This document shows positions 1-48,293 of a stretch of DNA of 64,000 nt, in pieces. Position 1 is the stretch's first letter, and the number at the start of each line of letters is the position of its first letter. The translations under genes and the position numbers were made by a program. This DNA comes from Trichosphaerium sp. ATCC 40318 (Eukaryota; Protista; Tubulinea). The notes under the pieces were generated by a model that was not told the origin of the DNA, did not search any database, and saw only the letters and a list, made by a program, of their open reading frames with translations. The DNA lies in assembly GCA_038496445.1 (NCBI GenBank), contig JALMLS010000578.1:434001-498000 (forward strand), given 5' to 3'.

Positions 1-251
1 GTCATATTTTTTATTGCCAGCGAGGGTTTGCGCTATGGCATCAGCAAGACCGTTTATAAATCCAGATGTTAACGCCTTATTTAACAATTATGAAATGATG
101 AACTTATACTTCGTACTCTAGTGCGTATAGGATTGGTTTGCAATGATCTAACAGTAAATTTAGCATAAAATAGATCAGTTTAACCGCCAAACCTGAGATA
201 AGCTGCCCAAAGTAATGTGAGGGTACCTGGAGCTTTAGATTGAACGCTCAT
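1..251 (-). CDS. Mpv17/PMP22 family membrane protein (5' part; runs off the window)
   Basis: Splicing two GT-AG introns from the ATG at 251 gives MSVQSKAPGTLTLLWAAYLRSLQTNPIRTRALTSGFINGLADAIAQTLAGNKKYD, which fits the family N-terminal motif Y-x-x-x-L-x-x-x-P-x-x-T-(K/R)-x-x-T-S-G...D-x-x-A-Q. Confidence 0.85.
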
Positions 252-827
252 AGCGAAGAAAGTGCGGTAGAATTAAAAATACCGTTGGGAGATAAAACGA
301 AAAAAGTCATGCTGTTTATTTTGTACGCTTCCGCCTTTGTATGGGCCTTACATGCGTAGAAGAGCCAAGTTCGACTATTTGTATGCATTTCAGGAGCGTT
401 GTGAGCGAGATGCAAAAAGGCCGAAAACAGTGCGAGTTTTCTTTGTAAACACACCAAAAAATGACAACTAACGCTAAAGGAAACTCGCAATATTCGCCTT
501 TTTTGCCGCAAAGCGGAAATGTTTCAGATGCACTAAAGACGGTGCATGTAAACAGCTATTCAACTGACGTTGTTAAAGCGTCGAGTCATGACTTGACTGA
601 GTCGCTGTGAGTACATAGCATCAATATCCATTTAGTGCGTCGTAGCACTAAACTGAGCGAAAGACAGTTTAAGGTGTCACGTGTTTATGCCTAAACCAAA
701 AACCGACAATGTGGGACACCGGACGCATCAGTACAGCACAGTGCGTTCTTCTAATAACTTAATAACTAGTCAAGTAACGTCTCTCAAGCACATTTCGTCC
801 AAAGCTTTTAGATTCCCAAATAACGCA

Positions 828-43661: not shown

Positions 43662-44116
43662 GTTTCATGCTGTGTCTTTGTTTCAACGTCACAAGCAAAC
43701 TCTAAACAGTGTTCTGACAATAATTTGCAGTCACTACTATTCAAATCTTGTTCGAAACGAATTTCTTCGGTAGCAGACTGAACCTGGGCCAACTTTAGAC
43801 CTCTGTGCCGGTGAGATAATTTTTTGGAGTAAACCCCTTTGTAAAATAAAACCACGTGTTTATTAAATTTAATTCCATGTTTTTTTACGAAGGGTATGAC
43901 GTATGCAAATGAAAGGTACAATTGAAACAAAGGATTTACAGCTTTCAAATACCTCAATGTAATGTGATGTTAAAGTAATTTTAAGGGTGTCACAAAGCTA
44001 CTATTTCAGTATGTACCAGAGTGCTATTTAATTTTGGTTTTTATTCATTTATTACAAGGCTTAACCAACTTCTAACAAACAATTTGTGCTATTATTTCCT
44101 ACCAAATCATACTAAC

Positions 44117-46110
44117 TTATAAAATAGTACAAAATCTTCTGCGTGCTAAAGAGGATAACCCAGTTAGAAAACAGAAAAGAAAAAAAAAAGGAAAAAAAGA
44201 AGAAAAAAAAAGAAGAAAAAGAAAAAAAGAAGGAAATGCCAAACCAGGTATCACGTACGCGGTGGAGCTTCTGAATCTTGTAATGATTCTGAAGTATCTT
44301 CCTCTTGTGGTTGATTAACCTTTTTCTTTGGTTGACTTTTCTTTTCCTCAGGTTTTTCTTCTTTCTTATTTTCTTCCTCTTTTTCTTCTTTCTCTTCTTT
44401 TCCTTTTTCCTTTTTGTCTTCTTCCTTAGTATCGGTGTCTTCATCTTTTGCTTGTAGAGGATCATTGACCTGTTCTTCGCCTTCAGGTGCGCTTGTAGTG
44501 GTTTGAACTTCTGTTGTTTCTTCCTTAGGTTCTTCCTCTTCAGGTGATTCGTCTTTATCATCTTCACCAGGTTTTTCATCTTCAGGTTCTTGTTCAGGAA
44601 CAGGCTCAGGCTCTTTAACTTGTTCAGATTCTGGTTCCTCTGATGGCTCTTTGGCTTGTGCAGGTTCTTGTTCAGGAACTGATTCAGGCTCTTCAACTTG
44701 CTCAGGTTCCGGCTCTTGTGCAGGTTCTGGTTCTGGTTCTTGCTCTTGTACAGCCTCAGGTTCAGGTTCAGGTTCTGGTTCTTGTTCAGGCTCTGGTTCT
44801 TGTGCAGGTTCAGGTTCAGGCTCTTGTGCAGCCTCAGGTTCTGGCTCCGGTTCTTCAACTTGTGCCTGCTCTGGTTCAGGTTCTTGTTCAGGCTCTGGCT
44901 CTTGTGCAACCTCAGGTTCAGGTTCCGGCTCCTGTGCAGGTTCAGGTTCAGGTTCAGGTTCTGGTTCTTGTTCAGGTTCTGGTTCCGGCTCTTGTGCAGG
45001 TTCAGGTTCTGGCTCTTGTGCAGGTTCTGGTTTTGGTTCTGGTTCTTGTGCAGGTTCAGGTTCAGGTTCAGGTTCTGGCTCAGGTTCTGGATCTTGTTCA
45101 GGTTCTGGTTCCGGCTCTTGAGCAGGCTCAGGTTCTGGTTCTTGCTCAGTTTCAGGTTCCTGTTCTGGATCTTGTGCAGCCTCAGGTTCTGGTTCAGACG
45201 TTTCAACAGGTGTTGTGTCAGGCTCAGGGTCTTCTGCAGGCTCTTGAACTGGTTCCTCGACTTGTTCAGGCTCTTCGACTTGTTCAGGTTCTGGTTCAGG
45301 TTCAGGTTCTGGTTCTTGTGCAGGTTCAGGTTCTTGTTCAGGTTCTGGTTCTTGTGCCTGTGCAGTTCAGGTTCTGGTTCTTGTGCAGGTTCAGGTTCTG
45401 GCTCTTCATTTTCTTTTACATCACTATCTGCTTGTTCGTCATCTTGTATTGGTTCGTCATTATCTTCATCCTTTTGTTGCTCTTCTGCCTCTTCTGTTTC
45501 TTGTGGTTTGATATTATCCTTTAAAACGAAGATTAGCACGTGTGAATAAAATATCTAAAAATAACCGAAGCATAAACAATTTTATTCCGTTATCTATCTT
45601 TTTCTAAACAACACAATCTGAAGGCTTACTAACAACCACAAATGCCATAAAAAACTTTAAAAAAAAATCATCAAAAATTATTTAGTTAATTACCTCCACT
45701 GTAGTAGCTTCTTTATCGCCGAATACATCATTTATTATCTTCCCCACCATATCTGTATGAACTCTATTATCTCCATCATCCCATTGATCGCCTACCTAAC
45801 GAACAATCGATTAAAACCGTCTCCAATTCTGATCGTTATTTTTTCCAAAAAAAATAAAACGCAACAACAAAAAACCGTTTTTGCTCAGAACCACAAATAT
45901 AATGTCACGTGACAATAATCTGGACCATAAAAAAATAATGCGTACTTTGTATTTATACTCAAAAGCGCTTTCAATAGTAAGCTTTGATTCCCATACGCCT
46001 TCGCCAATGTCATTCATTTCAACGCCTTTTTCCCAATCGCCATCAAATCCCATCAAAGTCACTTGTGTGACGTCTTCGCCACATTTTAATCGAAAAATCG
46101 TCTCTGTCAT
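44117..46110 (-). CDS. N-terminal starch/glycogen-binding module (CBM20/CBM48-like) + long EP(AQ) repeat + C-terminal polybasic CaaX (RRRFCTIL); 1-nt frameshift near 45365
   Basis: [29 protein letters not shown]|[11 protein letters not shown]. The repeat reads gaa-ctgca where gaa-cct-gca is expected. The last exon gives [11 protein letters not shown]. Confidence 0.75.
44590..45410 (-). repeat. Coding low-complexity tandem repeat (GAACCT/GAACCA hexamers; EPEPAQ units)
   Basis: About 820 bp of ggttca/ggttct/cttgtgca units on the + strand. Confidence 0.95.

Positions 46111-46420: not shown

Positions 46421-48293
<1,873 letters not shown>

Follow-up and report, generated by a model that had tools for sequence, protein, structure and literature searches.

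Results

A candidate glycogen-to-membrane tether encoded on the minus strand

We propose, with a probability of about 50%, that positions 44117–46110 (minus strand) of the window, i.e., the whole 64-kb stretch of DNA analyzed, encode a protein of about 518 aa that is cytosolic, has a head-spacer-anchor architecture, and tethers glycogen granules to a membrane of this marine amoeba. The head, an 89-aa module of the CBM20/CBM48 clan, would bind glycogen particles. The spacer of about 420 residues, mostly an acidic E/P/Q/A repeat and then K/E-rich, would be disordered or extended and would hold head and tail apart as a ruler. Finally, the Cys of the terminal RRRFCTIL would be geranylgeranylated by GGTase-I and then processed, and the prenyl group together with the RRR patch would insert into the cytosolic face of the presumed target membrane.

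All features described for this locus in the sequence-only reading were present, and the length of ~520 aa claimed there agrees with the spliced and base-restored model. Exon 1 (45946–46110) supplies the ATG and 55 aa (MTETIF...EYKYK) comprising the first part of the module with GDW, GVW, and EYKYK; in the alignment it starts at the same position as its relatives. An exact look-up of the exon 1 ORF, from ATG to stop, showed that it is absent from the protein collection. Removal of intron 1 (45796–45945; 150 nt, GTACGC..GTTAG, 43% T) joins EYKYK to VGDQW with the K-to-W spacing seen in bacterial CBM repeats and keeps the alignment to intron-free relatives going. Translation of exon 2 (45694–45795) completes the module with 34 aa (QW, DGDNR), and the two exons together yield the string EYKYKVGDQW..GDNR that had been quoted from the sequence. 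Exon 2 aligns with the latter half of the domain of the relatives P0041, P0046, and P0052 and, taken alone, was matched by the family profile in a search of the amoeba's own genome (38.2 bits, E 7e-8). Intron 2 (45519–45693; 175 nt, GTAATT..CTAAT..TTAAAG, 46% T) runs from phase 0 to phase 0, and the first part of exon 3 (45366–45518), 51 codons of an acidic linker passing into the first repeats, is in frame with exon 2.

The N-terminal head resembles alpha-glucan-binding modules

Exons 1 and 2 appear to encode a divergent CBM20/CBM48-type alpha-glucan-binding module, for which the sequence evidence is marginal. In an exon-by-exon Pfam scan, exon 1 matched CBM_48 with E 0.0029 and 18.3 bits, under the cut-off of 22.4; no CBM_20 match was obtained for exon 1 and no match at all for exon 2. 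In the ESM Atlas, exon 1 was placed with CBM_48, AMPK1_CBM, and CBM_20 clusters at 0.96 (179 features in common). A phmmer search with exon 1 against 1.84 billion representatives retrieved bacterial CBM48/CBM20 repeat proteins along with P0041, P0046, and P0047, the three eukaryote-type relatives being 42–48% identical. Matches of exon 1 alone to the PDB were at chance level only. A eukaryote-only family profile searched against 177,635 PDB sequences returned the glucoamylase CBM20 first (E 0.05) and the STBD1 CBM20 second (E 0.09). Among the relatives, the P0046 domain passes the Pfam threshold for CBM_20 (PF00686; 24.3 > 23.3 bits), while P0041 and P0052 are sub-threshold. Scans of the own genome with AMPK1_CBM (PF16561) listed 19 stretches at at least 10 loci, the window locus not among them, and the locus was not listed in the scan with CBM_48 (PF02922) either. 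The head lies in the same clan as CBM48 and AMPK1_CBM, but by score it is a member of neither family.

Structural matches were determined for P0041, a 273-aa protein from a JGI environmental contig and the closest relative, and rest on it and not on the window protein, to which it is 47% (exon 1) and 35% (exon 2) identical. The AF2 model of P0041:1-100 (pLDDT 87) superposes on the beta-sandwich, about 90–100 aa in size, of solved CBM20 domains. In Foldseek the STBD1 CBM20 (8x8k) was the top match, together with the glucoamylase SBD; ranks 1–12 were all alpha-glucan-binding modules, and AMPK-beta CBM structures were also among the matches. VIA-align of the model against CBM20 structures gave Z values of 9.8 and 9.7 over 86–87 residues, with STBD1 (8x8k) second by Z. 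The earlier claim of an N-terminal CBM of the starch/glycogen-binding type is supported at the level of the family, which has the STBD1 CBM20 among its top matches by sequence as well as by structure. In the window protein the canonical CBM20 site residues W, K, W, and N and a second-site Trp are kept, with GDW, GVW, EYK, QW, and DGDNR standing in aligned columns. When the profile is aligned with 1ac0 and 8x8k, the window motifs GDW, GVW, EYK, QW, and DNR are paired, and we take them to correspond to glucoamylase W543, W563, K578, W590, and N595. On the basis of this likeness the head would be expected to bind glycogen.

It is very unlikely, in our estimate, that the protein is anchored while its beta-sandwich serves another glycan or a protein, with the spacer functional in its own right, e.g., as a cation-binding or repulsive membrane brush. 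Such a head would fit the sub-threshold Pfam scores, a common fold is no proof of function, and P0041 lacks two of the aromatic positions in the alignment. Yet the window protein itself retains the full set of site residues, the twelve best structural ranks are confined to alpha-glucan-binding modules, and a paralogue in the own genome (contig C84) has the module ahead of GH31-like alpha-glucosidase exons.

The acidic spacer and the break in its reading frame

Downstream of the linker, exon 3 continues as a repeat spacer (44640–45363) of about 240 codons rich in E, P, Q, and A and built of EPEPAQ / EPEPEQ units, followed by a non-repeat part (44259–44639) that is first acidic, then K/E-rich. 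Over 315 codons the composition is E 38%, P 27%, Q 11%, and A 7%, with a net charge of −123. The repeat is free of stops and of aromatic or hydrophobic stretches, and its variation falls mostly at codon position 3; the plus-strand Gly/Ser frame fits this wobble argument equally well, though that frame has stops. ORFs on the plus strand of the repeat (frames LVQ, GS, and RF) were judged to be mirror artefacts of a stop-poor repeat. A nearby gene has a CBM48 joined to a similar EPEPVKEPEP spacer.

Protein searches were conducted with 44419–45363, 44419–44850, or 44260–44358 as queries. The 315-aa spacer query matched unrelated proteins by E/P composition alone and retrieved neither the protein itself nor an ortholog in the range of 173–551 aa, the non-repeat C-terminal part gave no match, and no transcript-derived protein was found in the collection by these searches. 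The name "procyclin-like" given to the spacer from sequence describes a compositional likeness only, as the comparison with Trypan_PARP (PF05887) gave E 3.3 and 8.1 bits vs. a cut-off of 100. Like the trypanosome procyclins (EP/GPEET) and the TonB-type EP/KP spacers, the window spacer is a (Glu-Pro)n sequence of extended, acidic, rod-like character. In contrast to procyclins, however, the window protein begins with the CBM itself, lacks both a signal peptide and a GPI signal, and is taken to be cytosolic; computation on the whole protein also gave no hydrophobic segment.

In the assembled sequence the frame breaks at 45364/45365, where only two bases (c-t) are left of a Pro codon, cct, one fewer than in the repeat. 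The sequence at 45365–45364 reads gaa cct gaa c-t gca, and the E/P reading changes frame across this point. We consider it improbable that the base loss is real and the gene decaying or inactive, with translation entering an N/Q/L/K frame and leaving no functional spacer or anchor. The broken frame as it stands would agree with decay, as would the finding that the protein collection holds no intact protein of the locus; the shifted frame is moreover open to 44112, but this follows from its composition because the repeat is stop-free. Against decay, the E/P frame is open for 368 codons (45363 to 44260), about 125 of them non-repeat, and no damage is seen in either CBM exon, in their splice sites, or in the tail. 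The loss of one base in a cc pair within an array of 18/30/78-nt units is also a typical assembly error. Splicing of a 62-nt intron (45419–45358, GTAAAA..CACAG) would restore the frame without any repair and the arithmetic works, but we judged it unlikely because it has 10% T vs. 38–64% T in the introns of this genome. We favor an intact gene in which one base has presumably been lost in assembly.

A putative last exon with a polybasic CaaX box

Exon 3 ends with ..SEAPP and a single base, the first of a Pro codon that splicing would complete. Behind it lies a putative last intron (44146–44258; 113 nt) that starts with GTACGT, is 64% T, and has CTAAC 17 nt before TTTAG. The putative last exon (44117–44145; 29 nt) encodes (P)RRRFCTIL and TAA, a polybasic patch followed by a CaaX box ending in Leu. 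Two AATAAA-like motifs read from the sequence at 44040–44053, about 65 nt past the stop, are possible poly(A) signals. The introns of COQ5 share the 5′ site and the CTAAY motifs with the putative last intron. Use of a second AG, 7 nt beyond the putative acceptor, would give a non-CaaX tail, and the unspliced reading ends in ..APPRT-stop with a TGA at 44253–44251.

Substrates of GGTase-I carry C-a-a-L at the extreme C-terminus, often after a basic cluster. The predicted tail is, as had been claimed, a textbook polybasic CaaL: the Cys is at −4, a2 is aliphatic, X is Leu, and the stop follows directly. In the six frames of the window (128,000 codon positions) a polybasic stretch followed by C-a-a-[LF]-stop occurs once, and this occurrence is RRRFCTIL; motif counts lead us to estimate that chance would produce a polybasic CaaL-stop about 0.4 times per window. 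The genome holds three prenyltransferase beta loci (C36, C104, and C20), a number that fits the usual trio of FTase, GGTase-I, and RabGGTase, and it encodes a GT3 glycogen synthase. Among the relatives of the window protein none was found with a CaaX end, and our literature search retrieved no paper in which CBM20 and prenylation come together in one protein.

The same stretch could be read as the end of a soluble, glycogen-coating protein that has no lipid anchor. The last "intron" would then be 3′ UTR, the protein would stop in ..SEAPPRT at the TGA of the unspliced reading, and the acidic spacer would serve as a bristle of entropic or electrostatic nature, keeping glycogen granules dispersed or recruiting cations. 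This stop codon falls within the GTACGTGA site, UTRs are also expected to be T-rich, the relative P0052 has no recognizable anchor, and the chance expectation for the motif is the 0.4 given above. On the other hand, the CaaL motif is the only one in the window, and its phase is correct; it is preceded by a consensus 5′ site, a CTAAC at 17 nt, and a long pyrimidine tract, and the first AG following this tract would be the acceptor. The closest relative, too, carries a C-terminal membrane anchor. We regard the soluble form as rather unlikely and retain the reading in which the CTIL exon is used and the tail prenylated as the more plausible one.

The head-spacer-anchor plan recurs in the closest relative

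In P0041 the CBM is followed by a 131-residue E/R/K single helix (pLDDT 88–96) and a hydrophobic transmembrane tail anchor (KD 2.47). The motifs TIF, GDW, EYKYK, NR, and D-x-W/F-G are common to P0041 and the window protein, whose modules belong to one CBM subfamily. The plan of a head, a stiff charged spacer, and a C-terminal membrane anchor recurs in P0041, although there the spacer is a single helix and the anchor a transmembrane segment, vs. an E/P/Q/A repeat and a predicted CaaX box in the window protein. Other relatives are arranged differently: P0052 (P0047/P0052) consists of the CBM and a charged region, and P0046 has about 95 extra residues ahead of the module. With P0041:1-100 as a query only P0041 itself was found. 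Searches of metagenome contigs gave no relative for the exon 1 query and, for the query with alignment A3, nothing beyond the P0046 contig and a CBM protein of 96 aa from a bacterium.

Discussion

Proteins of the STBD1 family have a hydrophobic membrane segment at the N-terminus and a CBM20 at the C-terminus, with Atg8-interacting motifs between the two. In addition, STBD1 carries a lipid modification, N-myristoylation (PMC5358331, PMC9249846). Both STBD1 and, with its predicted anchor, the window protein link a CBM20-type module to a membrane via a disordered middle region and face the cytosol. The order is nonetheless inverted, with the CBM N-terminal and the anchor C-terminal in the window protein. 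The anchor is a predicted prenyl group with a polybasic patch instead of a transmembrane or hydrophobic N-terminus, and the spacer is far longer, being an acidic E/P repeat. Aligned by structure, the relative is only about 14–18% identical, so that orthology with STBD1 is not indicated. In line with the initial picture of an inverted STBD1 analogue, the head is apparently of CBM20 type and the order is reversed; with its N-terminal CBM and a chain free of hydrophobic segments, the window protein is analogous to the STBD1 family and not one of its members. An STBD1-like role in glycophagy is not indicated: the spacer, over its roughly 420 aa, has no W, F, or Y and thus no Atg8-interacting motif.

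AMPK beta is likewise a single cytosolic polypeptide with both a lipid anchor and a glycogen-binding module of the CBM20/CBM48 clan, as predicted for the window protein; in AMPK beta, however, the myristate is N-terminal, the module is a CBM48, and the rest scaffolds the kinase with no long spacer. Polybasic CaaL tails like that of the window protein are found on Rho/Rac/Rap GTPases, whereas here the tail is carried by a carbohydrate-binding protein.

To our knowledge, animal STBD1 and myristoylated AMPK beta are the main examples from which the positioning of glycogen granules is understood. If the proposed architecture is true, a CBM protein that is anchored by a prenyl group and has a spacer of roughly 420 residues would represent an independently evolved way for a membrane to hold glycogen, and a rare CaaX client beyond the GTPase, lamin, and kinase families. 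The head and the plan are the same in the window gene and P0041 while ruler and anchor differ, which suggests selection on the architecture itself, and given this pair the "spacing" idea is testable through ruler swaps. We put forward, tentatively and as somewhat less probable than an even chance, that amoebae have an undescribed class of C-terminally anchored glycogen tethers. These would be composed of a CBM20-like head, a stiff charged ruler, and a membrane anchor, in which the ruler (E/P polyproline-type rod or E/R/K single helix) and the anchor (geranylgeranyl CaaX or transmembrane tail) are interchangeable. In this amoeba the tether would be part of a wider set of CBM fusions on glycogen (RNA ligase, PARG-like hydrolases, and coactosin), with the granules as an organizing platform at membranes. 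The tether, if true, would add to the signs that glycogen in the amoeba is a scaffold for many unrelated activities.

Gene Structure of the Candidate Tether Locus

The candidate tether locus was read, from the sequence and its translations, as a eukaryotic gene of four exons on the minus strand. Exon 1 (46110-45946; 55 aa, MTETIF to EYKYK) and exon 2 (45795-45694; 34 aa) are separated by a 150-nt intron 1 (between 45946 and 45795; GTACGC..GTTAG), and a 175-nt intron 2 (between 45694 and 45518; GTAATT..TTAAAG) leads to exon 3. The latter starts at 45518, its opening part being an acidic linker plus the initial repeat units, and is interrupted at 45365-45364 by a frame break, where a Pro codon is reduced to two bases. 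From 45363 to 44260 a Glu/Pro (E/P) frame, different from that on the upstream side, extends over 368 codons with no stop. A putative 113-nt last intron (GTACGT start at 44258, TTTAG end at 44146) precedes a putative last exon of 29 nt, which completes a split Pro codon and encodes RRRFCTIL followed by TAA. Once one base is added at the frame break, the predicted product has ~518 aa. The description given by the sequence-only reading was thus accurate.

On the opposite (plus) strand, a gene for a COQ5/UbiE-type methyltransferase, whose N-terminus looks mitochondrial (window 46436-48200), starts ~325 nt from the ATG of this gene, and a divergent promoter region is therefore probably common to both. 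Splice signals were judged against the introns of the methyltransferase gene (56 to ~430 nt; GTAAAT, GTGAGT or GTACGT at the start; CTAAT/CTAAA toward the 3′ end).

The N-Terminal Module Belongs to the CBM20/48 Clan

For sequence searches exons 1 and 2 were used as separate queries. Exon 1 alone matched Pfam CBM_48 with an E-value of 0.0029 and 18.3 bits, below the 22.4 cut-off, and the ESM Atlas feature search returned CBM_48, AMPK1_CBM and CBM_20 clusters at 0.96. In phmmer against 1.84 billion representatives exon 1 gave 18 matches, the majority of them multi-repeat proteins. Four multiply matching proteins were scanned and contained CBM_48, AMPK1_CBM and CBM_20 or, in one of the four, filamin repeats. 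Three single-match eukaryote-type proteins were found at 42-48% identity, all from JGI environmental contigs: P0041, the closest relative, P0046, which passes Pfam CBM_20, and P0047 (with a longer cluster-mate, P0052). In these relatives, which are free of introns, the latter half of the domain aligns with exon 2 through the shared motifs W-E/D-x-x-x-N-R and D-x-W/F-G/N-x-P/K-x-x-T-x-x-E, and the K-to-W spacing over the exon 1/2 junction equals that in the CBM repeats of the proteins P0050 and P0051. Homology thus supports intron 1 and the end of the domain, and also the start codon, which matches the position where the relatives begin. When the family profile was run against the organism's own genome assembly (70 Mb, 642 contigs; the window is C18:434001-498000), exons 1 and 2 were matched separately with 93 and 38 bits. 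Taken as a whole, we have little doubt that the locus is a real CBM gene.

A eukaryote-only profile compared with the PDB gave as top match the starch-binding domain of Aspergillus glucoamylase (1ac0, E 0.05), followed by the CBM20 of human STBD1 (8x8k, E 0.09); the E-values are weak, yet the profile points to the right family twice. The AlphaFold2 model of P0041:1-100, built on the eukaryote-only alignment, was confident (pLDDT 87) and all beta. The best Foldseek match was the STBD1 CBM20, followed in order by glucoamylase, CBM41, GDE5 CBM20, AMPK-beta CBM48, branching enzymes, CGTases and laforin, and VIA-align gave Z-scores of 9.8 (2vn4) and 9.7 (8x8k) over 86-87 residues. In the alignment, the CBM20 sugar-site residues GDW, GVW, EYK, QW and DNR are kept in the window protein, which is more canonical there than P0041, where two aromatics of the sugar sites are lost. 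The head is thus classified, with indirect fold evidence from the model of its relative P0041, as a divergent glucan-binding module of the CBM20/48 clan. The profile, the model and the kept residues support the starch/glycogen-binding type of module proposed earlier, binding itself being predicted from sequence.

The Acidic Spacer and the Frame Break

The composition of the E/P frame, taken across 315 codons, is 38% E, 27% P, 11% Q and 7% A, with a net charge of -123 and no hydrophobic windows. The underlying DNA is an imperfect repeat array with periods of 18, 24, 30, 48 and 78 nt. In the E/P frame the third codon position is the most variable (GAA/GAG; CCT/CCA/CCG). As this is also the wobble position of a plus-strand Gly/Ser frame, codon variation alone leaves the strand unfixed. 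The Gly/Ser frame has stops and no support upstream or downstream. On the minus strand, the reading runs on from the CBM exons, which homology supports. The absence of T-containing stop triplets from the repeat explains the long open frames elsewhere (N/Q/L/K, minus strand; LVQ, plus strand). ORF lists are misleading at the repeat, giving ORFs of 293, 283, 156 and 475 aa at window 44643-45549 (plus) and 44112-45539 (minus). The E/P frame is very probably the correct reading. A protein search with 315 codons of the spacer, upstream of a purine-rich, K/E-coding stretch at window 44360-44416, gave 33 matches, all of them compositional only; the same applies to the procyclin likeness noted previously.

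At the break, a cct codon has lost one C compared with the repeat unit (gaa cct gaa c-t gca cag gca caa). The simplest explanation for such a single-base loss inside a repeat is an assembly error. Splicing out a 62-nt segment (45419-45358; GTAAAA..CACAG) would need no repair, as phase 0 would then connect with the E/P frame, but this segment contains 10% T vs. 38-64% T in the other introns measured and encodes in-frame EP repeats, which makes splicing unlikely. The frameshift may also be true, and the gene decaying.

The Putative C-Terminal CaaX Exon

At its 5′ site the putative last intron carries GTACGT, also used by the adjoining COQ5 gene; it further contains a 64%-T tract, a CTAAC located 17 nt ahead of the first AG, and TTTAG as acceptor. 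CTAAT/CTAAA motifs lie at similar distances in intron 2 and the COQ5 introns. Six-frame translation of the whole window yielded 53 loose C-a-a-X-stop motifs, 13 of them ending in L or F, and one of these 13, RRRFCTIL, has at least three K/R within the six preceding residues. By a rough estimate, chance alone would give ~0.4 polybasic L/F-ending motifs per window; that one should also be in phase, follow good splice signals and lie 113 nt past the end of a 1.2-kb exon is much less likely. If the last intron were retained, the protein would end with ..APPRT at a TGA inside GTACGTGA, and if an alternative acceptor 7 nt further on were used, a non-CaaX end would result. We regard it as likely that the CaaX exon is part of the gene. 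A C-a-a-L end marks a protein for geranylgeranylation by GGTase-I, and acidic membranes are bound more strongly when a basic cluster is present.

Related Proteins and Genes

The ORF of P0041 (273 aa) is complete and has 5′ and 3′ flanks on its 923-nt contig. P0041 begins with the same N-terminal module as the window protein. Its E/R/K-rich stretch was modeled by AlphaFold2 as a single helix of 131 residues (109-239; pLDDT 88-96), ~20 nm if straight by arithmetic on the model, and its C-terminus as a hydrophobic helix (246-271; 19-residue window 250-268 with KD 2.47) ending in KYKNK, by its predicted features a classical tail anchor. According to the model, the closest relative thus has the same head-spacer-anchor plan, with a stiff charged spacer and a C-terminal membrane anchor that differ from those of the window protein, and it lends independent support to this architecture. 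P0052 has the head and an E/K/R stretch, with no anchor visible; its contig ends just past the ORF. P0052 (DNA stretch L013) and P0047, which represent one and the same relative, diverge after EREKK, at a run of A in the P0052 contig; their C-termini differ (165 and 205 aa), which makes the real end of this relative uncertain.

In the genome of the amoeba, the AMPK1_CBM profile matched more than 10 loci. A C18 neighbor gene (531837-535076, minus strand), ~53 kb past the gene described here, combines an AMPK1_CBM exon of canonical type (87 bits) with a subsequent ORF of 213 aa made of EPEPVKEPEP/EPEPAKEPEP repeats. Judged by sequence, it has the same design of head and E/P spacer, and E/P spacers behind glucan-binding heads thus recur in this amoeba. 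A paralogue of the CBM20-like module on C84 (minus strand; positions 1384-1779 of stretch L015, C84:169487-169741 and downstream in the assembly G000) occupies a single exon upstream of same-strand ORFs resembling GH31 alpha-glucosidase exons (..WVTPFAV.., ..IDGFKFDAGE..), a further link between the subfamily and alpha-glucans; P0046 may be a protein of this kind as well. Three prenyltransferase beta-subunit loci (C36:378996-380347, C104:169730-171065, and C20:392820-393968), each split by several introns, fit in number the usual set of FTase, GGTase-I and RabGGTase. A GT3-type glycogen synthase is present on C257, so cytosolic glycogen is expected.

Proposed Function

In the reading that joins these parts, cytosolic glycogen granules would be bound by the head, and the prenylated polybasic tail would sit in a membrane. 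The ~420-residue spacer, strongly anionic and proline-rich, would be repelled by the anionic membrane, stay extended and hold the granules off the bilayer. We give this tether reading as a whole a probability of about 0.5. No paper that connects CBM20 with protein prenylation came up in a full-text literature search.

AMPK beta combines an N-myristate and a CBM48 in one protein. STBD1 resides in the ER membrane; it is N-myristoylated, has a hydrophobic segment at the N-terminus and carries its CBM20 at the C-terminus (PMC5358331; PMC9249846). Of the inverted STBD1 analogue suggested by the sequence-only reading, the CBM20-type head is supported, and the order of head and predicted anchor would be inverted. 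A role as an STBD1-like glycophagy receptor is not indicated, since the spacer has no aromatic residue and thus no Atg8-interacting motif as defined in PMC9249846. The window protein is a member of neither family, its sequence relationship to them being limited to the CBM clan, and it differs from both in the inverted order, the predicted anchor chemistry and the spacer. Its predicted function, however, would work as in STBD1 and AMPK beta, by coupling a glucan-binding module to a membrane anchor.
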